From positions 379,378,001 through 379,442,000 of the forward strand of contig NW_027362761.1 of the NCBI RefSeq assembly GCF_046119375.1: a stretch of 64,000 nucleotides of DNA. Reading direction: 5' to 3'. The position numbers were made by a program, and so were the translations under genes. Under the pieces are notes generated by a model, which was not told the DNA's origin, made no database searches, and saw only the letters and a program-made list of their open reading frames with translations. Positions 2,660 through 58,209 of this stretch are shown piece after piece. Source of the stretch: Phyllobates terribilis. Its lineage: Eukaryota. Numbering within the stretch: the first letter of the stretch is position 1; the number at the start of each line of letters is the position of its first letter.

Positions 2660-4219
<1,560 letters not shown>

Positions 4220-7009: not shown

Positions 7010-7316
7010 TGCTCAAAAAAATAAAAGGAACACTCAAATAACACATCCTAGATCTGAATGAATGAAATATTCTCATTGAATACTTTGTTCTGTACAAAGT
7101 TGAATTTGCTGATGTAGCACCCCGAGGGCTCGGCTGCTACAGGGGTATTGCACCTCAAACCAGAGGTGTGGTATTCCACTCCCGGGTAAGGATGGAGTGT
7201 GGACCAGGACTCATTTAGCTGCATGCACCACACACACCACATTTCCGAGGGACAGGTCAACGGTGCTCCCACTAGACAGAAGTGCAGGCACGACAGCATC
7301 TGTCCCTGGCTGGAGT

Positions 7317-7434
7317 GGGGCGGGGGGTGGAATACCCAGTGGTGTAGGAGCAGATAGGGGTGGGTTTCTGGGCATAGGTAGGAGCCCATTGGTTGCTAGT
7401 CACCTGGGCTCGGGTGTCAGAAGGAGGTATATAA
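7317..7434 (+). promoter_or_regulatory. LTR U3 promoter (GC box, inverted CCAAT, TATA)
   Basis: GGGGCGGGG at ~7317, ATTGG at 7388-7392, TATATAA at 7428-7434. Repeated in the 3' LTR; copy 2 has TATAAGA (53271). Confidence 0.55.
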
Positions 7435-8416
7435 GGTGGGCACCATCTTAGGACAGGAGTCAGTTCAGTTCAGAGAGGAGTTCAGCCAGAGAGTGCTGAC
7501 AGAGAGCTGTGGCTCAGTCTGGGCCCAGCTCCAGAGGCAGGCCTGGAGTGGAGGCCAGAAACAGCAGAAAGAGAGAGGAGAAGGAACGGAAAGGAAAGTA
7601 AGAAAGGAACTGGAAAAGAGGAGAAAGGAAGCAAGGAACACAGAGAAAGGCCCAGAGACACGAGGACAGAAGGAACCCCATATGCCCAGGAGATACAGGG
7701 TGAAGGGTTGGCAGAGCAGGGTACCGGAACCCAAATTGGTGGAGGCGACTAATCCTCAGCCAAAACCGGAGGTTGTGACCACATCTTGATGCGACCCCTC
7801 ACTACATCCACCAGGAAAGCATACCACATAGGGTCAGGGAAACCGGAGAGAGGTTTCGCCAACAGAAGGCCCGAGGAAGCTGGACAAAGGTGGGTCACTG
7901 GTGGGGACGGCCAGAGAAAGGAAAGGAAGGGAGCCCTGTGCCACACTCTGGAATTGCCTGGGAGTTGGTCGAGCCCCTTGCCTGGTGAACGCAGCACGGC
8001 TCAGGCGGTCCTTCATGTGCACAAGTGACCTGGATGAGAACTGTGAGTAAAGCATTGGAAACTGCACCACACGTCTCTGTGTTTCATCGCCGCACCAGCA
8101 CCATTAGTACTGGGACGCTCACACCATCACTACCATCATCTACTCTAGCTGCCCTGAGGCAATACTCCTCCCGTGGGGAGTTATCCCATTCTTGGCTGCG
8201 CATATAACATCAGCCCCAGTGGTCTGCAGCGCAGCGGCGGTCCCCACTGACCGCAATCAACTTTTGGCGTAGTCGGACCATTACAATACAAATAGACTGC
8301 CACTGAATTGACCACCCTGGGCACGGACCGGGTCAGCGCCACTGAGACTACATCCCACCAGAGGCCTGGTTCCGGGTATCCCCTGCACAACACAGGCCCA
8401 TGGGGCGCGTCAACTT

Positions 8417-8434
8417 TGGCGTAGTCGGCAGGAT
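8417..8434 (+). promoter_or_regulatory. Primer-binding site complementary to the 3' end of tRNA-Ser
   Basis: TGGCGTAGTCGGCAGGAT is the reverse complement of ATCCTGCCGACTACGCCA, the 3' 18 nt of vertebrate tRNA-Ser(AGA/TGA type, recalled sequence). It lies 4 nt downstream of the LTR. Copy 2 (50595-50612) has one C>T. Confidence 0.85.
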
Positions 8435-8643
8435 CTTTACCAACCCGCCACAAGCGGGTATTGCGTGCCTGAAGAAGATCGTACATGTACCTTGAAAAGA
8501 AGTCTCCCGCCATTTCCAGAAGTTTCCCGCCGTTCGGAGTCGTTTCCCGCCATCCGGAGCCGATTCCCGCCATCAGACGCCATTTTGGACCGTTTCCCGC
8601 CATCTTCATCCGTTTTTCCCGCCCTGGCAGAGCGGACGCCATT

Positions 8644-10266
8644 ATGTGCGCACCAAAGGACAGCAGGAAGCCGCCTCCCATCGTGGGCCAGGTCCCAGAG
8701 TGGCGCCAAAGGAGGGGCCCGCCCCCAGCAACAATGAGTGCAGCAATGGAGATGTCCATCAATGTGGGGGGGGGCTGCCCCTAAAGGTGATTGTCAGCAG
8801 ATGCCCCCAAGACCACCCCCCATGGGGGCGGATAGGAAAGAAAACTGTGGGGCCGGGCGCGGCCTGGATCAGTCTGGACCTGCTGCACCCGGAGATGGAG
8901 GGAGCAGAAAACTCCACCAGCACCCTGGCCCGCAGCCTGCTGCAAGCTGAGCCACCCTGCAGCCTGACAGAGTTGCTAGCCCAGCTGCCCAGGGACCCGG
9001 ACAGTGCACGCGCAGCGCTGGAAGACCTGAACAGGAGGATGGTCCGGGCGCAGCGGGATGTGTTTGCCGGGTGGAGAGAGGAGATGGCCCGGCAGCACGA
9101 AGGCAGAAAGCGGAGGACCCCGCCGGGACCGGGCAGCGCGCTTACCACTGGGCGCGGAGAAGAGGGACCGGCAGCTGCAGACGACGCCGCGGAGGAGGCC
9201 ACGGAGACCGAGGCAAGTAATGGGGACGCCACCACCCCAAGCCCTGGGAACACCAGCCTGCCCTCACCCTCCACTGCGGGACCCGAAGCCCCGGGGACCG
9301 TACCTGACATCATGCCTCCACCGCCGCCAGCTAGGCCTCAGGCTGCAAACGTCACTGTCACGCCCCGCCCTGCGCTGTGCCCTCTGAACCCGGGCGCCGT
9401 AAAGCGGGAGACGTCACAGGCCGGGACCCAAGACCCAGCACACCCGGGCGCCACTGCCTCACCAGCGCCCCCTACCTTGGCGGTGCCACCCCCGGGCGCG
9501 ACCAACGGCCTGGTCGCAAGGCCGAGTGCCCCCGGGCGCTGCCACCCGTCCAAAGCCCGCGGTGCCACCCCTGGGTGCGGACCTGTACGCCCAACATACC
9601 AGCCCAGACGGGCTGCCCTTTGAGTGGCCACCGGAGCTTGTCAACCCCCGTCTCCGGAAAGAACAACCCCTGAGCGAGCCTCTGATCCCGGCCCCGGAGC
9701 CTGCCAACATCGCTGCACCCCCGCCGGAGGAATCCCAGTTTTCATGGGACCCCACCGGCGAGAATCTCATGGGGTTCACCCAGGAGATCCGGGCGGAAGC
9801 AGCCCGGCGCCTGGATTGCTGCCGTCAGCAGCTGGCCACCTTTGAAAGGGAGCGACGGCAGAGGCGCATCAGGGAGGAGCGACTCCAGGCCAGGAGCGCG
9901 GAACAGAAGAGGAGGGCCCGACAAGACGCCCACGCCATCCGCGGTCCCAGAGCCACCGGGACCGTAGTCAAGTTCCAGCTGGAGCACGGCTGGGGCTTCA
10001 TCAGAGACCCGGAGGCTGACACCGACGTCTTTGTCACCAGAAGGGACGTAGAGGGCCACCTGCCGGAGGGACATCACGGCCGTGACCTGTACCCCGGTGA
10101 CGTGGTCACCTACACCCGGCACAAGGGCGCAAAGGGACTGTATGCCCTCCATGTCCACCGTCTAACAGAGGAGGAGCTGCGGTACCGCCCAGACATGGAC
10201 TACCCTGAGTGCCCGGATGGGTCTGAAGGCTATGAGGAAGGAGCATCAGGAGGACACCGTTATTGA
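8644..10266 (+). pseudogene. CSD-protein ORF of copy 1, two frameshifts (~543 aa reconstructed)
   Basis: Pieces 8485/8644-8770, 8646-9623 and 9526-10266. Relative to copy 2 it has +2 G in the G-run at ~8766-8774 and an 11-nt deletion at ~9508. The C-terminal TGTVVKFQLEHGWGFIRDPEADTDVFVTRRDV...LYPGDVVTYTRHKGAKGLYALHV aligns to the CspA/Y-box cold-shock domain (RNP1 GWGFI, RNP2 DVFV). Confidence 0.85.
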
Positions 10267-10854
10267 ATAAACGGTAAAATTAACTGTAAATAGTTACCCG
10301 TCAGGGTATCAGAATTGTAGATGAAACTGTTGACTGTGTGAACGTTACCTGTGTGCCCCTAATCCCTAACCAGGCTGAGGACTGTGAGCAGCCACTCCCT
10401 TATCCCCACTGGCCGAGGACTGAGAGCGGCCACCCTTGTAAATAGTTGCGCTTCTTAAAGCGCCCCCTACTGATTTTATACAAGAACTGCAACGTCTACC
10501 TCAGGACGAATTAAATGGACTGTTGCACCTTTTCCTGGTCGCAAGTTGCACAGCGGCCAGAGTTCAAGAATCTGCTTGAAAATGTTTTACTTGAAAATGT
10601 TTTTGTTTAAGAATGTCTTATACTGAAAAAGTTTCATATGCTGCTAAAGGAGTTTATAGTATTCTATATGTGTGTGAAGAAAGTCTTATAATGTTTTACG
10701 ATGTTTATACCAGTAACGTTTAAAAGGAAAAGAGTACCTCCCATAAAGGGATGGGTTAATTGTTGAATGTCTTATATGCGAATGCATTCTAAAAATTTGT
10801 ATGTTTTCAAATTGTTTTGTTCTCTTCCAGCCCGAGGACGTGCTGTGATTTACC

Positions 10855-10863
10855 AGGGGGGAA
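10855..10863 (+). promoter_or_regulatory. Polypurine tract
   Basis: AGGGGGGAA directly before the TG of the 3' LTR, preceded by CCCGAGGACG as often seen at gypsy 3' ends. Identical in copy 2 (52949-52957). Confidence 0.85.
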
Positions 10864-12319
10864 TGTAGCACCCCGAGGGCTCGGCTGCTACAGGGGTATT
10901 GCACCTCAAACCAGAGGTGTGGTATTCCACTCCCGGGTAAGGATGGAGTGTGGACCAGGACTCGTTTAGCTGCATGCACCACACACACCCCATTTCCGAG
11001 GGACAGGTCAACGGTGCTCCCACTAGACAGGAGTGCAGGCACGACAGCATCTGTCCCTGGCTGGAGTGGGGCGGGGGGTGGAATACCCAGTGGTGTAGGA
11101 GCAGATAGGGGTGGGTTTCTGGGCATAGGTAGGAGCCCATTGGTTGCTAGTCACCTGGGCTCGGGTGTCAGAAGGAGGTATATAAGGTGGGCACCATCTT
11201 AGGACAGGAGTCAGTTCAGTTCAGAGAGGAGTTCAGCCAGAGAGGGCTGACAGGGAGCTGTGGCTCAGTCTGGGCCCAGCTCCAGAGGCAGGCCTGGAGT
11301 GGAGGCCAGAAACAGCAGAAAGAGAGAGGAGAAGGAACGGAAAGGAAAGTAAGAAAGGAACTGGAAAAGAGGAGAAAGGAAGCAAGGAACACAGAGAAAG
11401 GCCCAGAGACACGAGGACAGAAGGAACCCCATATGCCCAGGAGATACAGGGTGAAGGGTTGGCAGAGCAGGGTACCGGAACCCAAATTGGTGGAGGCGAC
11501 TAATCCTCAGCCAAAACCGGAGGTTGTGACCACATCTTGGTGCGACCCCTCGCTACATCCACCAGGAAAGCATACCACATAGGGTCAGGGAAACCGGAGA
11601 GAGGTTTCGCCAACAGAAGGCCCGAGGAAGCTGGACAAAGGTGGGTCACTGGTGGGGACGGCCAGAGAAAGGAAAGGAAGGGAGCCCTGTGCCACGCTCT
11701 GGAATTGCCTGGGAGTTGGTCGAGCCCCTTGCCTGGTGAACGCAGCATGGCTCAGGCGGTCCTTCATGTGCACAAGTGACCTGGATGAGAACTGTGAGTA
11801 AAGCATTGGAAACTGCACCACACGTCTCTGTGTTTCATCGCCGCACCAGCACCATTAGTACTGGGACGCTCACACCATCACTACCATCATCTGCTCTAGC
11901 TGCCCTGAGGCAATACTCCTCCTGTGGTGAGTTATCCCATTCTTGGCTGCGCATATAACATCAGCCACAGTGGTCTGCAGCGCAGCGGCGGTCCCCACTG
12001 ACCGCAATCCACGGGTGGCGTAGTTGGACCATTACAATACAAATAGACTGCCACTGAATTGACCACCCTGGGCACAGACTGGGTCAGCGCCACTGAGACT
12101 ACATCCCACCAGAGGCCCGGTTCCGGGTATCCCCTGCACAACACAGGCACAGGGGGCGCGTCACTGACAACAAAATCACACAAAAATCATCAATGGAAAT
12201 CAAATTTATTAACCAAAGGAGGCCTGGATTTGGAGTCACTCCCAAAATTAAAGTGGAAAAACACACTACAGGCAGATCCAACTTTGATGTAATGTCCTTA
12301 AAAGAAGTCAAAATGAGGC

Positions 12320-13345
12320 TCAGTATTGTGTGTGGCCTCCATGTGCCTGTATGACCTCCCTACAATACCTGGGCATGCTCCTGATGAGGTTGCGGATGGT
12401 CTCCTGTGGGATCTCCTCCCAGACCTGGACTAAAGCATCCGCCAACTCCTGGACAGTCTGTGGTGCAACGTGACATTGGTGGCTGAAGCGAGACATGATG
12501 TCCCCTATGTGCTCAATCGGATTCAGGTCTGGGGAACGGGCGGGCCTGTCCATAGCTTCAATGCCTTCATCTTGCAGGAACTGCTGACACACTCCAGCCA
12601 CATGAGGTCTGGCATTGTCCTGCATTAGGAGGAACCCAGGTCCAACTGCACCAGCATATGGTCTCACAAGGGGTCTGAGGAGCTCATCTCTGTACCTAAT
12701 GGCAATCAGGCTACCTCTGGCAAGCACATGGAGGGCTGTGTGGCCCTCCAAAGAAATGCCACCCCACACCATTACTGACCCACTGCCAAACCGGTCATGC
12801 TGAAGGATGTTGCAGGCAGCAGATCGCTCTCCATGGCGTCTCCAGACTCTGTCACGTCTGTCACATGTGCTCAGTGTGAACCTGCTTTCATCTGTGAAGA
12901 GCACAGTGCGCCAGTGGCGATTTTGCCAATCCTGGTGTTCTGTGGCAAATGCCAAGCGTCCTGCACGGTGTTGGGCTGTGAGCACAACCCCCATCTGTGG
13001 ACGTCTGGCCCTTATACCACCCTCATGGAGTCGGTTTCTAACCATTTGTGCAGACACATGCACATTTGTGGCCTGCTGGAGATCATTTTGCAGGGCTCTG
13101 GCAGTGCTTCTCCTATTTCTCCTTGCACAAAGGCGGAGGTAGCAGTCCTGCTGCTGAGTTGTTGCCCTCCTACTGCCCCCTCCACGTCTCCTGGTGTACT
13201 GGCCTGTCTCCTGGTAGCGCCTCCAGCCTCTGGACACTACGCTGACAGACACATAAAACCTTCTTGCCAGTGCTCGCATTGATGTGCCATCCTGGATGAG
13301 CTGCACTACCTGAGCAACTTCTGTGGGTTGTAGAGTCCGTCTCAT
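12320..13345 (-). CDS. Tc1 transposase, open 341-aa frame with two conserved Trp substituted
   Basis: ATG at 13345 ([12 protein letters not shown]). HTH region, TDESRF, QDNARPH and SPDLNPIE with 34 residues between D2 and E. WPARS>RPARS and HIWD>HIGD compared with the sibling copy at 60.5 kb. Confidence 0.85.
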
Positions 13346-13616
13346 GCTACCACGAGCGTGAAAGCACAACCAACATTCAGAAGTGACCAAAACATCAGCC
13401 AAAAAGCATTGGTACTGAGATGTGGTCTGTGGTCCCCACCTGCAGAACCACTCCTTTATTGAGTGTGTCTTGATAATTGCCAATAATTTCCATCTATTGT
13501 CTATTCCATTTGCACAACAGCATGTGAAATTGATTGTCAATCAGTGTTGCTTCCTAAGTGGACAGTTATATTCTGTTGTTTAAGTGTTCCATTTATTTTT
13601 TTGAGCAGTGTATATA

Positions 13617-24089: not shown

Positions 24090-25720
24090 ACTGCACCCCT
24101 CAAGGTGCTCAAAACCACATTCAAGAAGTTTATTAACCCTTCAGATGCCTCACAGGAATTTTTGGAATGTGGAAGAAAAAAATTAACATTTATTTTTTTT
24201 CACCAAAATGTTACTTTAGACCCCATTTTTTTATTTTTGCAAGGGTATCATTAAAAATGGACCCCAAAATTTGTTTTGCAATTCCACCTGAGCACGCCGA
24301 TACCCCATATGTGGGAGAAAACCACTGTTTGGGTGTACGGCAGGGTTCGGAAGGGAAGGAGCGCCATTTGACTTTTTGAATGTAAAATTTGCTTGAATAA
24401 TTAGCGGACGCCATGTTGTGTTTGGGGAGCACGTGATGTGCCTAAACAGTGGAAATCCCCCACAAGTGCCACCATTTTGGAAACTAGACCCCTCAGGGAA
24501 CTTCTCTAGATGTGTGGTGAGCACCCTGAACCCCCGGGTGATTCGCAGAAGTTTATAACATTGAGCTGTAAAAATAAAATTTTCACATTTTTCCCACAAA
24601 AATGTTTTTCAGCCCCCCACTTTCCATTTTCATAAGGGTAACAGGAAAAATTGCGCCATATCATTTGTTGTGCAATTTCTAAGGAGTAAGCCGATACCCC
24701 ATATATGTGAGAAAACCACTGTTTGGGTGCACAGCAGGGTTCGGAAGGGAAGGAGCGCCATTTGACTTTTTGAATGTAAAATTTGCTTGAATAATTAGCG
24801 GACACCATGTTGTGTTTGGAGAGCCCCTGATATGCCTAAACAGTGGAAACCCCCCACAAGTGACGCCATTTTGGAAGCTAGATCCCTCAGGGAACTTATC
24901 TAGATGTGTGGTAAGCATCCTGAACCCCCAGGAGCTTCACAGAAGTTTATAACATTGAGCCGAAAAAATAACATTTTCAAATTTTTCCCACAAAAATTTT
25001 TTTTAGCCCCCAATTTTGCATTTTCATAAGGGTAACAGGAGAAATTGCACCATACCATTTGTTGTGCAAATTCTCCTGAGTAAGCCGATACCCCATATGT
25101 GGGAGAAAACCACTGTTTGGGCGCACGGCATGGTTCGGAAGGGAAGGAGCGCCATTTGAGTTTTTGAATGTAAAATTTACTTGAATAATTAGCAGACGCC
25201 ATGTTGCGTTTGGAGAGCCCCTTATGTGCCTAAACAGTGAAAAAAACCCACATGTGACACCATTTTGGAAACTAGACCCCTCAGGGATCTTATCTAGATG
25301 TGTGGTGAGCACCCTGAACCCCCAGGTGCTTCACAGAAGTTTATAACATGGCGCCGTGAAAATAAAAAAATCAAACTTTTTCCACAAAAATAATGTTTTA
25401 GTGTCAATTTTTTTTATTTTCACAAAGGTAAGAGGAGAAAATGGACACCAAAAACTGTTGTGCAATTTCTCCTGAGTACACCGATACCCCATATGTGGGG
25501 AAAATACACTGTTTGGGCTCACGGCAGGGTTCAGAAGGGAAGTAGCACTGTTTGACTTTTTGAACGCAAAATTGGCTGGAATCAAGAGCAGATGCCATGT
25601 CGCGTTTGGAGAACCCCTGACACGCCTAAACAGTGGAAACCCCTCAGAAGTGACTCCATTTTGGAAACTAGACCCCTCAAGGATTTTATCAAGGGGTATA
25701 GTGAACATTTTGAACCCAGA
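24090..25720. repeat. Tandem ~394-bp units inside the TTAA element
   Basis: Anchor CTAGA(C/T)CCCTCA recurs at ~24483, 24877, 25271 and 25667. Confidence 0.9.
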
Positions 25721-25775
25721 GGTACGACACAGAATTTGATAACATTAGGTCATCATATTGAATAAATTGTCATTA

Positions 25776-26086: not shown

Positions 26087-26130
26087 CGCCATATTGTCAT
26101 CATTTTTTTTCTTTACTTTTGTAAAAATCC

Positions 26131-26315
26131 CAACCCAAACACAACCCTAACCCTAGCACAACCCTAACCCTAGCCCAACCCTAGCCCTAGCCCAACCCTA
26201 ACCCTAACCCTAGCCCAACCCTAACCCTAGCCCAACCCTAACCCTAGCACAATCCTAACCCTAGCCCAACCCTAACCCTAGCCCAACCCTAACCCTAGCA
26301 CAACCCTAACCCTAG
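26131..26315. repeat. Degenerate telomere-like array (CCCTAA/CCCTAG/CCCAA)
   Basis: Direct read: AACCCTAACCCTAGCCC-type ~17-bp units. Confidence 0.9.
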
Positions 26316-28470
26316 AGTTTATTTTTTACGCCGTTCCTCATGCGGTATAATTGATTAGACGACTTTATTCTTTGGGTCGGTGCGATTACAGCGATGCCAG
26401 ATATAGTTTTTTTCTGATTGACAGCTGTCACACACTAAAAGACGCTTTTTTTTGCAAAGACTAGTTTTTGCATCGCCATATTTTGAGAGGTATAATTTTT
26501 CCATATTTCGGCTGACAGAGTCATGAGACAGCTTGTTTTTTGCGGGACAAGTTGATGTTTTTACTGCAACCATTTTCAGCCATGTGACATTTTTTGATCG
26601 CTTTCTATTCTGATTTTTGGGAGGCAGAATAAAAAAATGCAACAATTCCGGAATTGTTTTTTTTTAAATTTTTATGCCGTGTGGCAAAATTGATAAGGCA
26701 GCTTTATTCTTCGGGTCAGTACGTTTACAGTGGCACCACATTTATATAGTTTTTCTATGTTTTGGCGCTTTTATACAATAAAAACTATTTTATAGAAAAA
26801 AGAGTTTTTTTGCATCGCTTTATTCTGAGAGCTATAACTTTTTTATTTTTCGGATGATGGAGCTGTATGGTGGCTTGTTTTTTCGCGGGACAAGATGATG
26901 TTTTCAACGTTACCATTTTTATTTGCATTCGTCTTTTTGATCGCGTTTTATTCCATTTTTTGTTTGGCGGTATGATGATAAAGCATCATTTTTTGCTTCT
27001 TTTTTTAAAAATTCTTTTACCGTGTTCACTAAAGGGGTAAACTGGTAGGACCGTTTTTTAGGTCAGGTTGATCCGGACGTCGCGATACCAAATATGTGTA
27101 CTTTTATTGGTTTACTTTTTTTTTTTCATATTAAATAAATATTATGGGTACAATATATTTTTATTTTTTGGGGAATATTTTTTTCTTTTTTTTTTTTTAT
27201 ATATATATTTTTACAATTTTTTTTAAAAAGTTCTTTTTCACTTTCTGGCACTTTTTTTTACTTTTACACTTTGTTCCACTATGGGACTTTCAATTTTTGC
27301 AGCCTGATCAGCTGTATAGCATAGAGAGCAGCAGCTCCCTATGCCATGCATCATGTCAGCGCTGCACTCAAGGAGAAGTTACTTTGGTTGTGCACTGCGC
27401 ATGACCAAAGTAACTTCCTGCTGTCTGGTGACCCGGATGTGTCATGACAACATCCGGGAGCCGCTGCAGACACCGCAGGACGCCGGAGAGGAGGAGAGTA
27501 CCGGCGCTTACCTCCCCTTGCTCCCGCAATGCTGAGATCGACTTCGATCGCAGCATTGCAAGGGTTAAGGTGCCAGCAGCGGTGCGGGACTGGTCCTGGC
27601 ACTTAGCACCGTGTGTCAGCTGTGACAATCAGCTGACACCCGGCGGTGATCGCCCCACACCGCTTGTGTGCAGGCACGATCGCAGCGCGCGTAATGGTAC
27701 ATAAGGCCCAGGGCACAGCTACGTACTATTACTGACAAGGTCGGAAAGGGGTTAAATATTTTTGTAATCCAATTTGTGTGTGATGCATCAGCACTAAATA
27801 GTCTAAGTTGGTGAAGTGAAGTGAGAAAAATATAGGCATAAATTTAATTTATAGGATCAAATAACTACAAATTGGCATGTGCATATGTATTCACCCCTTT
27901 TTTGCTATTAAGCCCTTAAACATTTCTGTTGCTAGCAACTACCTTCATAAATTACATACTTAGTGAAAGGCACCACTAACCAAACAACACCATGAAGACC
28001 AAGGAGATCTCCAAACTAGTCAGGGATAAAGTTTTTGAGAAGAACAAGTCAGGGATGGGTTATAAAAAAATATCCCAATCTCTGATTATTCCCCGGAACA
28101 CCATCAAATCCATCATCAAATGGAAAGAACATGGTACTACAGCAAAGATGCCAAAAGAGGGCCACTCACTGAAACTCTCAGTCTGGGCAAGGAGGGTATT
28201 AATCAGAAAGGCAGCAGAGATACCAAAGATAACCCTGAAAGAACTTCAAGCAGAGACTAGTATCTGTCCATGCGACCACAATTAGCCATACACTCCATAG
28301 AGGTGGCCTTTATGGAAGAATGGGCAGAAAAAAAAGCCTTAATTTACACACAAAAATTGTAAGGCTCATTTTGAGTTTGCCAAAAGACATGTGGGAGACT
28401 CCCCAAATGTATAAAGGAAGGTGCTGTGGTCAGATGAGACCAAAATGTAACTTTTTGGCCACCAAGGTGA

Positions 28471-28668
<198 letters not shown>

Positions 28669-31569
28669 TAGAGGTTCACCTTCCAACAAGACAATGACTT
28701 AAAGCATACTGCTAATGCAACACTTGAGTGGTTTAAAGGTAAAGGTGTAAATGTTTTGGAGTGGCCTAGTCAAAGCCTAGACCTTAATCCAATTGAAAAT
28801 CTGTGGTCAGACTTGAAGATTGCTGTTCACCAGAGGAAACCATTTAACTTGGAGGAGCTGGAGCAGTTTTGCCTTGAGGAATGGGCAAAAATCCCAGTGA
28901 CAAGATGTGGAAAGCTCATAGAGACTTGTCCAAAGCGACTTGCAGATGTAATTGCCGCAAAAGGAGGCTCTACAAAGTACTGACTTTAGGGGTGAATAGT
29001 TATGCACACTGAAGAATTCAGTTATTTTGTCCTATTTGTTGTTTTCTTCACATTTAAAAGAAAACTAAATGTTCACAGTTGTAGGCATGTTCTTTATATG
29101 AACTGATGCAAACCCTAAAAAAAACTGTGAAATTCCAGGTTGTGAGGTAGCAAAACATGAAAAATTAGAAGGGGGTGAACCCTTTCGCAAGCCACCGTAC
29201 ATAGAGTTCAGTTTATTCACCTACAATGAATATAAAAAGTCTGTTAAAATGCCAGGTCTTTTGTCATATAAAAAAATCATATCAAGAAGAATAATTTCAG
29301 AACTTTTTTTTAACTTTAATGTCACCCATAATCTGTACAAATCCATTGACAAACTAAAATCATTTTGAGGAGGGAAATAAAAATAGTAATACTAATATAA
29401 TGTGGTTGTGTAAGGTAGTGGAGATGCTGTCACATCCCCCTTGTAGAATCTGTGGATATGTCATGCATTCCTATGTGTTGAAATGTTGATATATTCATTT
29501 TCTGCCCAGCAACATCTGGTTAGCAACAAACAGGGTTAATAGTTGGTACTAGCCCAGGATGAGAGGAGTTATATGGGAACTAGCTGAGGCAGATTTACTG
29601 TTATGATCATATAGGGTTTAGCAACTGAGAAGTACTGAGCTAGCTACATGCAGACCTGCATTTAAAGGGTATTAGTTTGCCAAGAGGGCGACTCGAGTAC
29701 AGATAGTACAATCTCAAGGAAGGTGAAGAAACAGTGGGAAGTCAGATTTCAGGCAGAAAGCCTAGCAGAGACGGAAGGAAGGACAAGGTCCTAGGTGCAG
29801 GTCAGGGAGGCCCTTGTGACAGTACGGAACTTTGCTCAGGGGAAGCGGAAGATAGAATTGAAAGGAAGTGAAAGGAAGGAATTACATAAACAGGACTTTA
29901 GCAAATGCTTGGGTGAAGACCTGGGGTCTTCCGTGAGCATAATACTACTCAGACAACACAGGGTGAGTAAAAATAGTGTGGCAATATTTTATTGACCCAC
30001 CAAACTGACAATAAACACATAGAACAGTCCCAACAAATACCCAAGATGGTGCAAAATTACACAGTCTCACCCTTTCGTTGGCCCGCTTGGGAATAGAACA
30101 GCTGCGACTTTGGGACTTCCAGGGCAAAATACCTTAACCAGTGTCCCCCCTCTTTTGGTAGGCCCCCACAGAGAGGAGGTAGCGGCAAGCTTAGGAAGCT
30201 GACAGACCTTCAAGGTACAAGGCCAGGAGACCTGAGGGTCCACCCTGGCCTCTCCGAGAGTTTCAATGGGGCCAGATGACCGGCTGGTCCCAATCTGGCT
30301 TCTCTGAATGTCTCCATGGGTTCCAGGCGGCTGGAGGATCCCACCTGGCAACCCCAAACAACATATCCATGGGGCCAGGTGACTTTTTCTTCCCAACCTG
30401 GTCTCCCCAAATGTATCCATTGATTCTCTGATGGTCAGTGGAGCATATCTGTATCCTTCTAGTCAGGGCCGTATACCCTTAGGCCGAAATCATGTAGAAT
30501 CTCAATCTGTGTCTCTCTGGATCAAGACTTGCTACCAAGCTGCTGTTATGAAGAGTGTCTCTCTGATTCTCTGCTTCTCCTTGATTCTCCTTGCAGCAGG
30601 ATAGAAAACCCTTTTTATATTTACATAGGTGGCTAAGGTCATCAGTCACAGGTCAGAGATAAAGGTGCAGGGCTCACTCAGGTCTCATTGTTTGAGCTAA
30701 TCCCCCAGCTCTTGTAACCAAACTAGCTGGTTTAGTACAATATGCAATTAGTATAGTAACAAACATCATTGTTCCCAAACACTAAGTCACTGTCCTTCTT
30801 AACCAGCCAAACAAACACATACATTCAATGGTCAACACAAAAATAATAATGTATTTTTCTTGGCTTAACAAATCTAAACGTCTGACTGATTAAGATAAGA
30901 AGCTGTTTTGTCACAGCTTTTCCATAAGGAGGAAAGCTAAGTGTCGCCATAATGGGACAGGACCTCACCTGTGGAGAACTTAGGATACAGTGGTACAGGA
31001 TGGAACCTATGACCCTCGTCAAACAGACCGTAGAGGTACTAGTGAGGAGTTGTATTACCATACCCCCGCCAGTGGGGTACTCACAAGTCAGCTGCAACTG
31101 GGAACTGAGAGTAGCTGTGAGGGGCCATATCTTTACAATTCAATCCATGTGGTCCCACAGGGGAAGACGGAGCTTCCCATGATAGTTTCCTGGACTGTTG
31201 TGAGATGTGAGAAGAGTAATGTGTCACTTGTAACTAGAAAATGCCTTTTTTCTGCTAATTGCAAGCGAAGCATTCGTGAAGTATTGTGCCTACTATCTGA
31301 TGTACATAATTCATATCAAGATACTGTTCAGTATAGAAAAAGTTTGACTATGAGCTCACTCCTTCAATTCTACCTCTTCTGGTCCTGTCCTGCCAAGTCC
31401 AACAGTATGTGGTCTGCAGAGGCATATTGCCAAGGTAACATCAGCACACACACCTAGCCAGGACCCCCATTTTCATCTAGCATGGCAGGGTGTGAAAGAT
31501 AAGTTGCACACCTATGACTGCCTCCCCACACCATGTTACAGTTGCATAAGTGTAAACACCCTCTTATAA

Positions 31570-34276: not shown

Positions 34277-40812
<6,536 letters not shown>

Positions 40813-45520: not shown

Positions 45521-46441
45521 CCACATGTCCGCATAGTGCGATATCTGGTTTCATTTGAATGAATACAAATGTGCAGAGTGTATTCAACAAAATGGCGCCA
45601 AAGTACGCGCATGCGCATACCACGCTGTCCATTTTGTCGAAGACACTGTTCATATTTGTCTTCACTAAAATAGCGCCGGAAATCGGCTCCTGCGCCACAC
45701 TCCTCCCCTGGCCTCTCCAGAGATGACAGGACCGAACACGTATGTGTTTATGGTGCCGGAGATTGCGGTATGCGCTCAGTGCTTATGCATACCGCGATCT
45801 CTGGCGCCACACTCCTCATCCCTGTCTGGGATGTGGATGTGTCTTTCTGTCTGTGGCCAGACTGCACAGGTATTGCGCTTGCACAATCTATAGAGGCTTC
45901 TGGCAGAAGGACACATCCCTGATTATACTATAGATACCAGTCATGTATTGTCATATAAACTATACAGGGCCATACCTAGGGGAATCAGGGGGGGCATGTG
46001 ACCTGGGTACAGCCGTCAGGGGGTTGCCTTCGGGCCACCTCATCTGGTGGTCAGAGGTGTCTCCCAGGTAGCTGCATTTTGCATTCGACCGTTCTCTGAG
46101 CTGGCTGTGGAACCGACAATCGATCAGAGCTGTGGAACCGACAATCGATCAGAGAAGGGAGCTATGTACGGGCTCATATTGTATGTAGGGAGCTATGTGG
46201 GTGCTCATACTGTATATTGGGAGCTATGTGGGGCTCATACTGTATATAGGGAGCTATGTACGGGCTCATACTGTATATAGGGAGCTATGTGGGGGCTCAT
46301 ACTATATATAGGAGGCTATGTGCGGGCTCATATTGCATATAGGGGCTATGCGGGATCTCATACTGTATCTAGGAAGCTATGTGCGGGCTCATACTGTATC
46401 TAGGGAGCTATGTGCGGGCTCATACTGTATCTAGGGAGCTA

Positions 46442-48077
46442 CAGTGGTGGTCAAAAGTATTGGCACCCCTGCAATTCTGTCAGATAATACTCAGTTTCTT
46501 CCTGAAAATGATTGCAATCACAAATTCTTTGGTATTACTATCTTCATTTAATTTGTCTTCAATGAAAAAACACAAAAAGAATTGTCCTAAAGCGAAATTG
46601 GATATAATTCCACACCAAACCTAAAAAAGGGGGTGGACAAAAGTATTTGCACTATTTGAAAAATCATGTGATGCTTCTCTAATTCGTGTAATTAACAGCA
46701 CCTGTAACTTACCTGTGGCACCTAACAGGTGTTGGCATTAACTAAATCACACTTGCAGCCAGTTAACATGGGTTAAAGTTGACTCAACCTCTGTCCTGTG
46801 TCCTTGTGTGTACCACATTGAGCATGGAGAAAAGAAAGAAGACCAAAGAACTGTCTGAGGACTTGAGAAACCAAATTGTGAGGAAGCATGAGCAATCTCA
46901 AGGCTACAAGTCCATCTCCAAAGACCTGAATGTTCCTGTGTCTTCCGTGCGCAGTGTCATCAAGAAGTTTAAAGCCCATGGCACTGTGGCTAACCTCCCT
47001 AGATGTGGACGGAAAAGAAAAATTGACGAGAGATTTCAACGCAAGATTGTGCGGATGGTGGATAAAGAACATCGACTAACATCCAAACAAGTTCAAGCTG
47101 CCCTGCAGTCCGAGGGTACAGCAGTGCCAACCCGTACTATCCGTCGGCGTCTGAATGAAAAGGGACTGTATGGTAGGATACCCAGGAAGACCCCACTTCT
47201 TACCCCGAGACATAAAAAAGCCAGGCTGGAGTTTGCCAAAACTTACCTGAGAAAGCCTAAAACGTTTTGGAAGAATGTTCTCTGGTCAGATGAGACAAAA
47301 GTAGAGCTTTTTGGGAAAAAGCATCAACATAGAGTGTACAGGAAAAAAAAAGAGGCATTCAAAGAAAAGAACACGGTCCCTACAGTCAAACATGGCGGAG
47401 GTTCCCTGATGTTTTGGGGTTGATTTGCTGCCTCTGGCACTGGACTGCTTGACCGTCTGCATGGCATTATGAAGTCTGAAGACTACCAACAAATTTTGCA
47501 GCATAATGTAGGGCCCAGTGTGCGAAAGCTGGGTCTCCCTCAGAGGTCATGGGTCTTCCAGCAGGACAATGACCCAAAACACACTTCCAAAAGCACTATA
47601 AAATGGTTTGAGAGAAAGCACTGGAGACTTCTAAGGTGGCCAGCAATGAGTCCAGACCTGAATCCCATAGAACACCTGTGGAGAGATCTCAAAATGGCAG
47701 TTTGGAGAAGGCACCCTTCAAATATCAGGGACCTGGAGCAGTTTGCCAAAGAAGAATGGTCTACAATTCCAGTAGAGCATTGTAAGAAACTCATTGATGG
47801 TTACCGGAAGCGGTTGTTCGCAGTTATTTTGGCTAAAGGTTGTGCAGCCAAGTATTAGGTTGAGGGTGCCAATACTTTTGTCTGGCCCATTTTTGGAGTT
47901 TTGTGTGAAATGATCAATGATTTGATTTTTGCTTCATTCTCTTTTGTGTTTTTTCCTTGCAAGCAAATTAAATGAAGATAATAAGACCAAAGAATTTGTG
48001 ATTGCAATCATTTTCAGGAAGAAACTAAGTGTTATCTGACAGAATTGCAGGGTTGCCAATACTTTTGGCCACCACTG
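46442..48077 (+). mobile_element. Young full-length Tc1 (long-TIR type)
   Basis: TA|CAGTGGTGGTCAAAAGTATTGGCA ... TGCCAATACTTTTGGCCACCACTG|TA, with ~200-bp imperfect TIRs. Confidence 0.95.
46824..47858 (+). pseudogene. Tc1 DD34E transposase with a single premature stop
   Basis: ORFs 46779-47423 and 47469-47858 are in the same frame. The only lesion seen is TGA at 47421-47423 in MFWG*FAASG, where Cys is expected. SDETK, QDNDPKH and SPDLNPIE are intact. Confidence 0.9.
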
Positions 48078-48325
48078 TATGTACGGGCTCATACTGTATC
48101 TAGGGAGCTATGTTCGGGCTCATACTGTATCTAGGGAGCTATGTACAGGCTCATACTGTATTTAGGGAGCTATGTGGGGGCTCATACTGTATCTAGGGAG
48201 CTATGTGAGGGCTCATACTGTATCTAGAGAGCTATGTGTGGACTCATACTGTATCTAGGGAGTTATATGGGTGCTCAAACTGTATATAGGGGGATGTCAG
48301 CATACTTAATTCTGCTCAATATTAA

Positions 48326-49210: not shown

Positions 49211-49291
49211 TGAGTCATACAATTAATATATTTTTTTATTATTTTGTTAATATTATTAATATTGAGCAGAATTAATTTCAGCCTATTGATT

Positions 49292-52200
49292 TGTAGCACC
49301 CCGAGGGCTCGGCTGCTACAGGGGTATTGCACCTCAAACCAGAGGTGCGATATTCCACTCCCGGGTAAGGATGGAGTGTGGACCAGGACTCGGTTAGCTG
49401 CATGCACCACACACACCCCATTTCCGAGGGGCAGCTCAACGGTGCTCCCACTAGACAGAAGTGCAGGCACGACAGCATCTGTCCCTGGCTGGAGTGGGGA
49501 GGGGAAGGAAAACCCAGTGGTGTAGGAGCAGATAGGGGTGGGTCTCTGGGCATAGGTAGGAGCCCATTGGTTGCTAGTCACCTGGGCTCACACATAGAGG
49601 GAGGTATAAGAGGTGGGCACCATCTTAGAGTGAGTTCAGTTCTGTGAGAGAAGGAGTTCAGCCAGAGAGTGCTGACAGGGAGCTGTGGCTCAGTCTGGGC
49701 CCAGCTCCAGAGGCAGGCCTGGAGTGGAGGCCAGAAACAGCAGAAAGAGAGAGGAGAAGGAACCGAAAGGAAAGTAAGAAAGGAACTGGAACAGAGGAGA
49801 AAGGAAACAAGGAACACAGAGAAAGGCCCAGAGACACGAGGACAGAAGGAACCCCATATGCCCAGGAGATACAGGGTGAAGGGTTGGCAGAGCAGGGTAC
49901 CGGAACCCAAATTGGTGGAGGCGACAAATCCTCAGCCAAAACCGGAGGTTATGACCACATCTTGGTGCGACCCCTCACTACATCCACCAGGAAAGCATAC
50001 CACATAGGGTCAGGGAAACCGGAGAGAGGTTTCGCCAACAGAAGGCCCGAGGAAGCTGGACAAAGGTGGGTCACTGGTGGGGACGGCCAGAGAAAGGAAA
50101 GGAAGGGAGCCCTGTGCCACGCTCTGGAATTGCCTGGGAGTTGGTCGAGCCCCTTGCCTTGTGAACGCAGCACGGCTCAGGCGGTCCTTCATGTGCACAA
50201 GTGACCTGGATGAGAACTGTGAGTAAAGCATTGGAAACTGCACCACACATCTCTGTGTTTCATCGCCGCACCAGCACCATTAGTACTGGGACGCTCACAC
50301 CCTCACTACCATCATCTACTCTAGCTGCCCTGAGGCAATACTTCTCCCGTGGGGAGTTATCCCATACTCGGCTGCGCAAACAACATCAGCCTCAGCGGTC
50401 TGCAGCGCAGTGGCGGTCCCCATTGACCGCAATCCACGGGTGGCGTAGTCGGACATTGTTTTTACCTAAAACTGCCACTGGTTTGACCGCCCTGGGCACG
50501 GACCGGGTCACCGCCACACGGAGACTACAACCCCCCAGCGATCCGGCTCCGGGTATCCCCTGCACAACACAGGCCCAGGGGGCGCGTCAAATTTTGGCGT
50601 AGTCGGTAGGATCTTTTCCAACCCGCCACAAGCGGGTATTGCGTGCCTGAAGAAGATTGTGCATGTACCTTGAAAAGAAGTCTCCCGCCATTTCCAGAAG
50701 TTTCCCGCCGTCCGGAGCCAATTCCTGCCATCAGACGTCATTTTGGACCGTTTCCCGCCATCTTCATCCGTTTTTCCCGCCCTGGCAGAGTGGACGCCAT
50801 TATGTGCGCACCAAAGGACAGCAGGAAGCCGCCTCCCATCGTGGGCCAGGTCCCAGAGTGGCGCCAAAGGAGGGGCCCGCCCCCAGCAACGATGAGTGCA
50901 GCAATGGAGATATCCATCAACGTGGGGGGGCTGCCCCTAAAGGTGATTGTCAGCAGATGCCCCCAAGACCACCCCCCATGGGGGTGGATAGGAAAGAAAA
51001 CTGTGGGGCCGGGCGCGGCCTGGATGAGCCTGGGCCTGCTGCACCCGGAGATGGAGGGAGCAGAGAACTCCACCAGCACCCTGGCCCGCAGCCTGCTGCA
51101 AGCTGAGCCACCCTGCAGCCTGACAGAGTTGCTAGCCCAGCTGGCCCAGGGACCCGGACTGTGCGCGCGCAGCGCTACAAGACCTGAACAGAAGGATGGT
51201 CCGGGCGCAGCAGGAAGTGTTTGCCGGGTGGAGAGAGGAGTTGGCCCGGCAGCACGAAGATAGCCAGCGGAGGACCCCGCCGTCACCGGGCAGCGCGCTT
51301 ACCGCTGGGCGCGGAGAAAAGGGACCGGCAGCTGCAGACGACGCCGCGGAGGAGGCCACGGAGACCGAGACAGGTAATGGGGACGCCACCACCCCAAGCC
51401 CTGGGAACACCAGCCTGCCCTCACCCTCCACTGCGGGACCCGAAGACCCGGGGACCGTACCTGACATCATGCCTCCACCGCCGCCAGCTAGGCCTCAGGC
51501 TGCAAACGTCACTGTCACGCCCCGCCCCGCGCTGTGCCCTCTGAACCCGGGCTCTGTAAAGCGGGAGACATCACAGGCCGGGACGCAAGACCCAGCACAC
51601 CCGGGCGCCGCTGCCTCACCAGCGCCCCCTACCTTGGCGGTGCCACCCCCGGGCGCGACCAACAAGCGACCACCGGCCTGGTCGCAAGGCCGAGTGCCCC
51701 CAGGCTCTGCCACCCGTCCGAAGCTCGCGGTGCCACCCCTGGGTGCGGACCTGTACGCCCAATATACCAGCCCGGACGGGCTGCCCTTTGAGTGGCCACC
51801 GGAGTTTGTCAACCCCCGTCTCCGGAAAGAACAACCCCTGAGCGAGCCTCTGATCCCGGCCCCGGAGCCTGCCAACATCGCTCCACCCCCGCCGGAGGAT
51901 GCCCAGTTTGCATGGGACCCCACCGGCGAGAATCTCATGGGGTTCACCCAGGAGACCCGGGCGGAAGCAGCCCAGCGCCTGGATTGCTGCCGTCAGCAGC
52001 TGGCCACCTTTGAAAGGGAGCGACGGCAGAGGCGCATCAGGGAGGAGCGACTCCAAGCCCGGAGCGCAGAGCAGAAGAGGAGGGCCAGACAAAACCCCCA
52101 AGCCATCCGCGGTCCCCGAGCCACCAGGACCGTAGTAAAATTCCAGCTAGAGCATGGCTGGGGCTTCATCAGAGACCCGGAGGCTGACACCGACGTCTTC

Positions 52201-54255
52201 GTCACTAGAAGGGACGTTGAAAGCCACCTGCCAGAGGGACATCACGGACGTGACCTGTACCCCGGTGACGTGGTCACCTACACCCGGCACAAGGGCGCAA
52301 AGGGACTGTACGCCCTCCATGTCCACCGTCTAACGGAGGAGGAACTGCGGTACCGCCCAGACATGGACTACTCTGAGGGTCCGGACGGACCTGAAGACTA
52401 CCCGGAAGAGCGAGGAGGACACCGTTACTAATGAACGGTAAATGGAACTGTATATAGTTACCCGTAAGGGTATAGAAACTGTTGCTGAGTGGAGTGTGGT
52501 CCCTGTTGGGACTGGTATAGAACTGTGTAGAAGTTACCCCCTATATCCCTTATCTGGCTGGGGACTGAGAACAGCCATCCCTTTTTCCTAATCTGACTGG
52601 TGACTGAGAGCAGCCATTCCCCTAAGAAGAAAGAACACCTGGTCGCAAGTTGCACCGCGGCCAGAACTCAAGAATGTGTTTTAAAAAAAAAAAAAAAAAA
52701 AAAATGTTTTACTTAAGAATGTCTTATACTGAAAAAGTTTCATATGCTGCTAAAAGAGTTTATAGCATTTTATATGTGTGTGAAGAAAGTCTTGTAATGT
52801 TTTATACCAGTAACGTTAAAAGGAAAGAGTACCTCCCATAAAGGGATGAGTAAATAGTTAATGTCTTATATGTGAATGCATTCTAAAATTTTTGTATGCT
52901 TTAAATTGTTTTGCTCTTTTCAAGCCCGAGGACGTGCTGTGATTTACCAGGGGGGAATGTAGCACCCCGAGGGCTCGGCTGCTACAGGGGTATTGCACCT
53001 CAAACCAGAGGTGTGATATTCCACTCCCGGGTAAGGATGGAGTGTGGACCAGGACTCGGTTAGCTGCATGCACCACACACACCCCATTTCTGAGGGACAG
53101 CTCAACGGTGCTCCCACTAGACAGAAGTGCAGGCACGACAGCATCTGTCCCTGGCTGGAGTGGGGAGGGGAAGGAAAACCCAGTGGTGTAGGAGCAGATA
53201 GGGGTGGGTCTCTGGGCATAGGTAGGAGCCCATTGGTTGCTAGTCACCTGGGCTCACACATAGAGGGAGGTATAAGAGGTGGGCACCATCTTAGAGTGAG
53301 TTCAGTTCTGTGAGAGAAGGAGTTCAGCCAGAGAGTGCTGACAGGGAGCTGTGGCTCAGTCTGGGCCCAGCTCCAGAGGCAGGCCTGGAGTGGAGGCCAG
53401 AAACAGCAGAAAGAGAGAGGAGAAGGAACGGAAAGGAAAGTAAGAAAGGAACTGGAACAGAGGAGAAAGGAAGCAAGGAACACAGAGAAAGGCCCAGAGA
53501 CACGAGGACAGAAGGAACCCCATATTCCCAGGAGATACAGGGTGAAGGGTTGGCAGAGCAGAGTACCGGAACCCAAATTGGTGGAGGCGACTAATCCTCA
53601 GCCAAAACCGGAGGTTGTGACCACATCTTGGTGTGACCCCTCACTACATCCACCAGGAAAGCATACCACATAGGGTCAGGGAAACCGGAGAGAGGCTTCG
53701 CCAACAGAAGGCCCGAGGAAGCTGGACAAAGGTGGGTCACTGGTGGGGACGGCCAGAGAAAGGAAAGGAAGGGAGCCCTGTGCCACGCTCTGGAATTGCC
53801 TGGGAGTTGGTCGAGCCCCTTGCCTGGTGAACGCAGCATGGCTCAGGCAGTCCTTCATGTGCACAAGTGACCTGGATGAGAACTGTGAGTAAAGCATTGG
53901 AAACTGCACTACACGTCTCTGTGTTTCATCGCCGCACCAGCACCATTAGTACTGGGACGCTCACACCCTCACTACCATCATCTACTCTAGCTGCCCTGAG
54001 GCAATACTTCTCCCGTGGGGAGTTATCCCATACTCGGCTGCACAAACAACATCAGCCTCAGCGGTCGGCAGCGCAGCGGCGGTCCCCACTGACCGCAATC
54101 CACGGGTGGCGTAGTCGGACATTGTTATTACCTAAGACTGCCACTGGTTTGACCGCCCTGGGCACGGACCGGGTCACCGCCACACGGAGACTACAACCCC
54201 CCAGCGATCCGGCTCCGGGTATCCCCTGCACAACACAGGCCCAGGGGGCGCGTCA
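49292..54255 (+). mobile_element. Non-autonomous LTR retroelement carrying a cold-shock-domain ORF, copy 2
   Basis: LTRs 49292-50589 and 52958-54255 (1298 bp each, about 22 differences by eye). TSD GATT at 49288-49291 and 54256-54259. PBS 50595-50612, PPT 52949-52957. Lies in SUSD2 intron 5 in sense orientation. Confidence 0.93.
50802..52431 (+). pseudogene. CSD-protein ORF of copy 2, one +1 frameshift (~542 aa reconstructed; 411-aa C-terminal frame open)
   Basis: The frame runs from ATG 50802 through MEISINVGGLPLKV to an extra G at ~51143 (CTGGCCC vs CTGCCC in copy 1). The 51196-52431 frame includes coiled-coil-like, Pro-rich and CSD segments. Confidence 0.85.
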
Positions 54256-57898: not shown

Positions 57899-58209
57899 GG
57901 GCGGACACAGACTGTAGTGGGCCCCTGTGCAAGAACTTTTTTTGGGCCCCCCCCCCTGCCCTTCATAGGGGGCATGAAGGCCCCCCCGTGCATCTCTCAT
58001 CCCCCCGTGCATCTCTGATTCCCCCCTCTCCTAGTTAATTAATTGTATTTAAAAAAAATAAAACTTTTTATACTTACCCGCAGGGCCGGCTCCAGGTTTT
58101 TGTGGGCCCTGGGCGACAGAGTTTCAGTGGCCCCTTTAACACATACCATGATTCATGATGCACAGATACCACAGAGAAATATATATATAGGCCAAGGATT
58201 TCACTTCTT

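Follow-up and report, generated by a model that had tools for sequence, protein, structure and literature searches.

Purifying selection on the cold-shock domain encoded by a non-autonomous LTR retroelement of poison frogs

Results and Discussion

The stretch of the Phyllobates terribilis genome analysed here spans 64,000 nucleotides (NCBI RefSeq assembly GCF_046119375.1, contig NW_027362761.1, positions 379,378,001 to 379,442,000 of the forward strand; hereafter the window, which contains no N) and holds two copies of a retrovirus-like element bounded by long terminal repeats (LTRs). The single gene of this element encodes a protein with a cold-shock domain (CSD), and comparison of the two copies revealed that the CSD has been under strong purifying selection. 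We hold this selection, together with the anatomy of the element, with high confidence. The whole explanation offered below, which joins the anatomy, the selection on the CSD, a role of the protein as chaperone or packaging adaptor, and recombination, is given a probability of about 0.6; the chaperone or packaging mechanism, taken by itself, is put forward tentatively, at somewhat below even odds.

Purifying selection on the CSD

The CSD segments of copy 1 (9952-10203) and copy 2 (52120-52371) were aligned over 84 codons without a gap. Codon-by-codon translation revealed 15 nucleotide differences, of which 13 were synonymous, all at third positions, and two were non-synonymous, both at first positions (codon 3, GGG/AGG, G/R; codon 35, GGC/AGC, G/S). 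An earlier reading of this DNA, made from the sequence alone (the original prediction), had proposed purifying selection on the domain from a manual alignment, and the recomputed alignment matched its 13:2 count and its list of codons exactly. When sites were counted by NG86 (60.2 synonymous and 191.8 non-synonymous sites), the synonymous divergence (dS) was 0.255 and the non-synonymous divergence (dN) was 0.0105, giving a dN/dS of 0.041 (binomial P=5e-7). A GY94-type maximum-likelihood (ML) codon model (pairwise, F3x4) yielded an omega of 0.034, with a likelihood-ratio test value of 30.6 against omega=1 (p=3e-8).

The possibility of an artefact was weighed against these values, the candidates being chance, the decay of CpG sites, editing of G to A, and an overlapping constraint other than on the protein that acts on every third base. 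A CpG is involved in about 5 of the 13 synonymous changes; read from copy 1 to copy 2, the 15 changes comprise seven G>A, two each of C>A, C>T and T>C, and one each of A>T and A>G; and the reverse frame that shares third positions with the coding frame also looks synonymous, at 11:3. This reverse frame, however, is not an open reading frame (ORF), because three stop codons lie inside it. The remaining two reverse frames gave 2:13 and 0:14, and the two other forward frames gave dN/dS above 1 (NG86); from these frame comparisons it follows that the signal belongs to the forward protein frame. The original prediction had named a bias shared with the non-coding flanks as the point to be checked. 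A CpG-aware context spectrum, with CpG, TpG and CpA separated, was therefore taken from the LTRs, leader and 3' untranslated region (3'UTR) of both elements; applied to the CSD, it predicted that 27% of changes would be synonymous, and it failed to explain 13 of 15 (P(>=13 of 15)=2.6e-6). In a type-preserving permutation, in which the observed substitution types were placed again at random on matching bases in both directions, the mean was 4.2-4.6 synonymous changes, and 13 were reached in none of 200,000 trials in either direction. The same CSD residues are also kept in other species. Chance or mutation bias as the cause of the 13:2 ratio is effectively refuted by these controls, and we give the artefact a negligible chance; the selection proposed originally is strong, and it survives every control of mutation spectrum and reading frame.

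Local constraint and mosaic history

When the ML codon model was fitted to separate parts of the ORF, codons 8988-9503 and 9508-9885 gave omega values of 1.08 and 1.31, neither different from 1, whereas codons 9886-10203 gave 0.056 (p=2.7e-10); the raw counts of synonymous to non-synonymous changes were 8:17, 3:10 and 19:5, respectively. Constraint is thus confined to the last ~105 codons, which comprise the end of a long helix and the CSD, with omega at 0.03-0.06 and dS at ~0.25, and the 300 codons upstream are neutral.

The synonymous divergence of the CSD (0.25) also exceeds, by a factor of about four, both that of the upstream ORF (0.06-0.085) and the overall divergence between the LTRs of the two copies (6%); it resembles the divergence of the 3'UTR (18.6%) and of the sequence encoding the acidic tail of the protein (25%). 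Synonymous differences start to cluster at position 9888, with 19 at about 76 sites in the 3' block compared with 11 at about 252 sites upstream (Fisher P=8e-7). A sliding comparison showed stretches of 0.7-2.7% divergence, which is no more than post-insertion decay, in the LTR core (7488-8087), the leader and most of the N-terminal half of the ORF, and patches of 15-31% at 7338-7487, 8163-8312 and 10173-10600. Given that the dS of the CSD is about four times that of the rest and matches the 3'UTR, the two copies are mosaics, and we infer that the block from the CSD to the 3'UTR coalesces deeper than do the N-terminal half, the leader and the LTR core. In retroviruses, co-packaged RNAs usually undergo template switching, and such switching between RNAs of diverged subfamilies would be the simplest cause of the mosaic. 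Because of this structure, the 13:2 ratio reflects a much longer history for the CSD module than for the rest of the element. Neither the domain-limited constraint nor the deeper divergence of the CSD had been part of the original prediction. When element copies are compared in pairs, a single dN/dS value combines segments that differ greatly in age, a point of importance for dating transposon copies and for selection tests on them.

A strand asymmetry was also observed between copy 1 and copy 2: on the plus strand, G>A outnumbered A>G (70 vs 44), and C>T (43) and T>C (38) were balanced. The G>A excess may be a trace of minus-strand cDNA deamination or of reverse transcriptase (RT) bias in the copy-2 lineage, and its significance is weak.

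Timing of selection

Both LTRs of one provirus are identical at insertion. The two LTRs differ by 1.77% in copy 1 and by 1.69% in copy 2, which corresponds to ~0.9% decay per copy since insertion. With this calibration, ~4.4 post-insertion differences are expected in the 252 bp of the CSD, ~3.2 of them replacements, and two replacements were seen (Poisson P(<=2)=0.38). Post-insertion decay can account for both, and the amino-acid sequence of the CSD was therefore essentially frozen before insertion. When polarised against a Phyllobates homologue (P0001, described below), the two replacements were derived in different copies, the states shared with that protein being G (codon 3) and S (codon 35); codon 35 varies across the family (S, P, E, A, G), and the G>R change at codon 3 stands in the CpG-to-CpA context that had been proposed for it. 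The view that the protein mattered while the two lineages were replicating is likewise supported, in that essentially all pre-insertion change in the CSD, as calibrated by the LTRs, was synonymous.

Element structure

Self-BLAST and alignment delimited two 5.0-kb units at 7113-12163 and 49292-54255 (Table 1). Their LTRs, of 1300 bp in copy 1 and 1298 bp in copy 2, are direct repeats that start with TGTAGC and end with GCGTCA (TG..CA). The 4-bp target duplications differ (CTGA in copy 1, GATT in copy 2) and the wider flanks are unrelated; therefore, the units are independent insertions and not a segmental duplication. A primer-binding site (PBS) lies 4-5 nt past the 5' LTR and is complementary to the 3' end of tRNA-Ser, including CCA, at 18 of 18 nt in copy 1 and 17 of 18 in copy 2; the same 17-mer heads antisense template oligonucleotides for human tRNA-Ser (PMC3299991). 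At the other end of the interior, a polypurine tract (PPT; AGGGGGGAA) abuts the 3' LTR. The interior measures 2.45 kb in copy 1 and 2.37 kb in copy 2, and a single ORF takes up more than half of it. No signal of gag, protease, RT, integrase or env was found in the interior, and a Pfam search at E<=10 returned the CSD alone from the interior ORFs; in the same kind of search, a Gypsy element of the window (35363-40314) showed gag and all pol domains. Both units thus form one family of non-autonomous, retrovirus-like LTR retroelements, as the original prediction had assumed for this element. The Gypsy element was also considered as the helper of this family and was rejected, as it shares neither the LTR nor a 12-mer of the tRNA-Ser PBS. 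An Rfam scan of the whole element gave only a sub-threshold chance match to U6atac (17 bits vs 33).

The frame of the gene opens at an ATG at 8895 in copy 1 and at 51051 in copy 2, and a second in-frame ATG follows at 9039 and 51196, respectively. Between 9505 and 9506, 11 bp of copy 2 have no counterpart in copy 1, and the resulting frameshift leaves the CSD part of copy 1 as a separate open frame (9526-10266). Copy 2 has one extra bp relative to copy 1 at 51143-51144, in the stretch that separates its ATGs, and from its second ATG it runs through 411 codons to a stop at 52429-52431. The start annotated for the Phyllobates homologue corresponds to the second ATG; in distant homologues, helix-forming sequence is found farther upstream than this. 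The pieces of the broken ORF were analysed separately.

Table 1. Features of the two element copies within the window
Feature	Position	Strand	Remark
Copy 1 target-site duplication CTGA, 5' side	7109-7112	+	partner 12164-12167
Copy 1 5' LTR	7113-8412	+	1300 bp, 1.77% from own 3' LTR
Copy 1 PBS	8417-8434	+	18/18 nt tRNA-Ser complement
Copy 1 ORF, N-terminal piece	8895-9505	+	ATGs 8895 and 9039; helix, then Pro/Ala-rich disorder
Copy 1 ORF, middle piece in the CSD frame	9508-9951	+	cross-species motif block and Arg/Glu-rich helix (9790-9924)
Copy 1 CSD segment, limits of the original prediction	9952-10203	+	Pfam match 9955-10158
Copy 1 acidic C-terminal tail and TGA stop	10204-10266	+	25% from copy 2, in-frame 3-bp length difference
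Copy 1 3'UTR	10267-10854	+	18.6% from copy 2, several indels
Copy 1 PPT AGGGGGGAA	10855-10863	+	abuts 3' LTR
Copy 1 3' LTR	10864-12163	+	
Copy 2 target-site duplication GATT, 5' side	49288-49291	+	partner 54256-54259
Copy 2 5' LTR	49292-50589	+	1298 bp, 1.69% from own 3' LTR
Copy 2 PBS	50595-50612	+	17/18 nt tRNA-Ser complement
Copy 2 first-to-second-ATG stretch	51051-51195	+	+1 bp at 51143-51144, out of frame with the remaining ORF
Copy 2 open ORF, 411 codons, second ATG to TAA	51196-52431	+	start as in the Phyllobates homologue
Copy 2 CSD segment	52120-52371	+	
Copy 2 PPT	52949-52957	+	
Copy 2 3' LTR	52958-54255	+	

The anatomy and the mosaic structure bear on an alternative in which an autonomous frog retrovirus, perhaps infectious at one time, had the ORF as an accessory gene; selection would have acted there, and the copies would be gag-pol-env deletion derivatives that gained CSD-3'UTR-U3 blocks by co-packaging recombination. 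The diverged block of CSD, tail and 3'UTR is 3'-terminal, where complex retroviruses keep their accessory genes, and the mosaic fits such an origin. The 4-bp duplications, the tRNA PBS and the long LTRs suit a retrovirus-like element, and otherwise complete endogenous retroviruses (ERVs) of birds carry CSDs at various positions (PMC12287698). However, the layout that lacks gag and pol, the leader and the N-terminal half of the ORF are common to both copies at 3-5% divergence, so that the short form itself must have propagated; no remnant of gag, pol or env lies between the LTRs; and no pol gene is annotated within 10 kb of four single-exon homologues, transposon genes being often left unannotated. 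We consider the accessory-gene origin unlikely.

Several further observations were made on the element itself. A 14-nt copy of the start of the PBS is found inside every LTR, ~148 bp before the LTR end (at 8265, 50441 and 54107, and in mutated form at ~12016). Only the 5' LTR of copy 1 has, directly before this internal copy, 4-5 bases that resemble the flank of the true PBS, and the LTR-LTR differences clustered there look more like the product of a single conversion or mispriming event than like independent point mutations. The CpG observed/expected ratio is 0.70-0.72 in the interiors (8413-10863 and 50590-52957), 0.39 in the LTRs and 0.38 in 20 kb of flanks, and the interior and the LTRs thus contrast despite their equal insertion age. 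Three small hairpins stand right after the stop codon (10256-10310 / 52420-52475), with stems that are identical in both copies and loops that differ. Farther on, a ~40-nt motif is present in two repeats (GGCYG-AGGACTGNGAG-CRGCC; 10370-10435 / 52555-52615) within 3'UTR sequence that is 20-30% divergent. The folding energies of the hairpins and of the repeat motif were no better than those of shuffled sequences (z -0.9 and +1.5).

Encoded protein and its predicted fold

The gene product, of ~410-455 residues, consists of a short helix, ~220 disordered Pro/Ala-rich residues, a 45-residue Arg/Glu-rich helix, the CSD and an acidic tail. AlphaFold2, run on an eight-row alignment, returned a mean pLDDT of 56, as expected for a largely disordered chain. 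In this model, a helix at residues 2-25 is followed by an unstructured region from 29 to ~250, by a long helix at 255-299 with pLDDT above 90, and by a five-strand barrel at 309-378 (strands 309-317, 322-326, 334-337, 359-366 and 371-378) with pLDDT of ~85-92. After the barrel come a short helix and the disordered acidic tail, ~30 residues following the CSD. The Pfam CSD profile (PF00313) scored 35.0, 38.5 and 30.2 bits, above its gathering threshold of 27. When the barrel was compared with the PDB by Foldseek, it resembled CspA, CspB, CspE, YB-1 and CRHSP-24 (E 3e-6 to 1e-4, target-normalised TM 0.65-0.88), and the CSDs of YBX2, Unr and Lin28 were further matches. Against viral structures, Foldseek found Csp-like proteins of phages and giant viruses alone, with no retroviral match.

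Alignments to YB-1 made with HMMER showed that RNP1 is present as GWGFI and that the VFV of RNP2 is retained; in the copies, the K-W of beta-1 is replaced by V-K and the His of RNP2 by Thr. These are the motif states that had been read from the sequence at the outset, and they hold. Across the family, the RNP2 His is T, A or N, and the position of the beta-1 Trp is K, A, D or S.

The possibility that the ORF is a Gag derivative in which a CSD has replaced the nucleocapsid was examined and rejected, since there is no capsid fold and no gag match in Pfam and the N-terminal half is disordered. The ORF translations contain no CCHC zinc knuckle. A reading of the long helix as a trimerising coiled coil, as in ORF1p, is unsupported; the helix is Arg/Glu-rich and may be a basic RNA-binding helix or a single alpha-helix.

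Homologues and origin of the domain

A word-indexed search of 5.8 billion proteins yielded one relative, P0001, which is 48% identical; this protein from Phyllobates terribilis has 431 residues and is uncharacterised. When 1.84 billion cluster representatives were searched exhaustively with a profile, four more single-domain relatives emerged, from Ranitomeya variabilis (P0002), Ranitomeya imitator (P0005) and Anomaloglossus baeobatrachus (P0003 and P0006). Beyond these five frog proteins, the profile search gave only unrelated multi-CSD proteins of protists and bacterial Csps, and a word-based protein search with the C-terminal 194 residues gave no match. In the searched databases, the family thus appears limited to Dendrobatidae and Aromobatidae, that is, the poison frogs and their sister family. 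This distribution, together with the Tc1/mariner and Gypsy load of the window, would also point to a dendrobatoid frog as the likely origin of the DNA. P0001, P0005 and P0006 pass the PF00313 threshold, and P0002 and P0003 fall just below it (24 bits). Four of the genes (P0001, P0002, P0003 and P0006) consist of a single exon; P0005, with a gene model of ~21 kb, is not single-exon as annotated.

An alignment of seven family sequences contained 23 invariant columns, all in or just before the CSD and nearly all within it, and sequence upstream of the long helix or downstream of the CSD could not be aligned. The invariant columns include a family-specific loop motif, RRDVE-x-HLP-x-GH-x-x-RDL-x-x-GD. 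Compared with P0001, the CSD was 74% identical, the long helix 58%, the block preceding the helix 67% and the disordered region 37%. This conservation across species, which covers a longer span of time, agrees with the codon evidence.

The CSDs of vertebrate Y-box proteins gave the family profile its highest score (38 bits, E=1.4e-8), and the alignment across the long loop needed one single-residue gap; bacterial proteins of the CspA type scored 33-35 bits. Our best guess from these sequence comparisons is that the CSD derives from a host Y-box-type domain, and that this origin is old, since identity is only ~28%.

A related alternative holds that the ORF is a host Y-box-like gene or gene family that was transduced by an LTR element, the low dN/dS stemming from a host function in the donor or in domesticated copies. 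The best fit to Y-box CSDs, nearly gapless through a loop of the long eukaryote type, speaks for a host gene, and RefSeq lists the homologues as ordinary uncharacterised proteins. However, non-coding sequence flanking the ORF is common to both copies, as are the PBS, the PPT and the LTRs, and each copy has its own target duplications; therefore, the ORFs were copied as parts of the element. In addition, both copies carry frame-shifting length differences in the N-terminal half, four homologues are intronless, and identity to any host CSD is below 30%, so that there was no recent donor. We regard transduction of a host gene as very unlikely.

Proposed role of the protein

CSDs bind single strands and have chaperone activity. 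In the explanation that we prefer, the protein would bind the single-stranded RNA or cDNA of the element itself and would act as a chaperone, protector or packaging adaptor, as the Gag nucleocapsid or LINE-1 ORF1p do elsewhere; capsid, reverse transcriptase and integrase would come from an autonomous helper, and RNAs with a working CSD would have left more copies. A chaperone role is suggested because single-strand binding and chaperone activity of the CSD would here be combined with an adjacent arginine-rich helix. A benefit to the encoding RNA is proposed because selection sees the protein of a non-autonomous element only if the benefit returns to that RNA. The role is suggested further by birds, in which retroviruses captured CSDs repeatedly (PMC12287698).

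Stated most specifically, the element would represent a poison-frog LTR lineage that lacks gag, pol and env and keeps a helix-plus-CSD protein as its own RNA chaperone or packaging adaptor. This protein, based on a Y-box-type domain captured long ago, would be to LTR elements what ORF1p is to LINE-1, and the element would have diversified into several lineages that are deeply diverged (<50% identity outside the CSD) and swap the CSD module through recombination. In this full form the proposal is doubtful, and we rate it a little lower than the mechanism alone.

Some observations weigh against the explanation preferred here. Of the four residues with which Y-box and Csp proteins canonically stack against nucleic acids, the whole family lacks two (the beta-1 Trp and the RNP2 His), and the top family-specific motif lies in the long beta3-beta4 loop and is not found in Y-box proteins; judged by sequence, the conserved surface could be protein-binding, nucleic-acid binding being assumed. 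The comparison rests on two DNA copies (n=2). No helper with the same LTR or a tRNA-Ser PBS is present within the 64-kb window. If the first ATG is the true start, both copies are length-shifted in the N-terminal half, and the leader holds eight upstream ATGs, which obscure the route by which the ORF would be translated.

Relation to known systems

Capture of CSDs by bird retroviruses is already known, and non-autonomous LTR elements are common. In birds, 46 ERVs were reported to carry CSDs, and capture was repeated (PMC12287698, Mol Biol Evol 2025). The avian elements are, like the frog element, vertebrate retrovirus-like LTR elements with PF00313 as extra coding capacity; they were classified by RT and so have pol, whereas the frog element is without gag, pol and env and has the CSD protein as its sole gene. 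Selection on the frog CSD is measured here, whereas the section of the avian report consulted describes no selection analysis.

The Y-box proteins (YB-1/YBX1 and YBX2), which gave the best profile match, share GxGFI (RNP1-like) and VFV with the frog CSD, and the Ala/Pro-rich region that lies N-terminal of the CSD in YB-1 is found in the frog protein as well. Nevertheless, identity is ~28%, the beta-1 Trp and RNP2 His are missing in the frog family, and the long C-terminal domain of alternating basic and acidic clusters is absent, an Arg/Glu-rich helix preceding the CSD instead. Y-box genes are multi-exon host genes, whereas the frog ORF is uninterrupted and lies between LTRs.

LINE-1 ORF1p is a nucleic-acid-binding protein that serves the RNA of its own retroelement and has a long helix before its RNA-binding domain, and BARE2 is a non-autonomous LTR element that has only Gag and relies on the enzymes of a partner. 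By analogy, the frog element may be functionally like both, in its helix before the domain (ORF1p) and in its dependence on foreign enzymes (BARE2). It differs in that its protein has no RRM, CCHC knuckle or capsid fold and its helix is highly charged; LTRs, in turn, are absent from LINE-1. With LARD and TRIM elements the frog element shares LTRs, PBS, PPT and target duplications without pol, as well as mobilisation in trans. Their interior is non-coding by definition, whereas more than half of the frog interior is an ORF (at least 411 codons), the 3' third of which is under strong purifying selection.

In literature searches for LTR retrotransposons that encode a CSD and for frog ERVs with a CSD, in which the avian report was the only relevant paper, we found no description of a non-autonomous LTR element with a CSD protein as its sole gene, nor of domain-limited constraint, mosaic history or a poison-frog-restricted family of such an element. 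Non-autonomous retroelements are usually seen as non-coding parasites of their helpers; here, the sole gene encodes a host-type nucleic-acid-binding domain with a dN/dS of ~0.03. If the explanation is true, a parasitic RNA would be investing in its own RNA-binding protein to compete for the machinery of its helper. The frog element offers a concrete example that bears on why retroviruses repeatedly capture CSDs. Dendrobatoid frog genomes are 6-12 Gb in size and dominated by transposons, and a family confined to dendrobatoids may bear on the expansion of those genomes.

Other repeats in the window

The Gypsy element used above for contrast is a Ty3/Gypsy retrotransposon on the minus strand (35363-40314), with LTRs at 35363-35799 and 39889-40314 that are 94% identical and with ORFs for gag (39302-39793), protease and RT (37866-39173), and RNase H and integrase (36205-37929). 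Three Tc1/mariner transposase genes were found, at 12320-13540 (minus strand), 60445-61584 (minus strand) and 46779-47858 (plus strand). The first two, which share ~93% identity over 500 bp, match HTH_Tnp_Tc3_2 and DDE_3 in Pfam; the third, which is split into two ORFs, was assigned from its translation alone. Copy 1 of the CSD element lies ~150 bp from the gene at 12320-13540. Tandem arrays occupy 58180-60310, 46139-46496, 48054-48320, 24253-25736 and 26092-26341, and the array types comprise C-rich 31-bp minisatellites beside Tc1 copies, a 394-bp unit repeated ~4 times in tandem, and an interstitial array of degenerate CCCTAA-like, telomere-type sequence whose super-period is 17 bp. Finally, the segments at 2770-4155 and 27752-29095 form an inverted repeat with ~1.3-kb arms, 80-93% complementary and ~24 kb apart, and are probably two copies of another transposon in opposite orientation.

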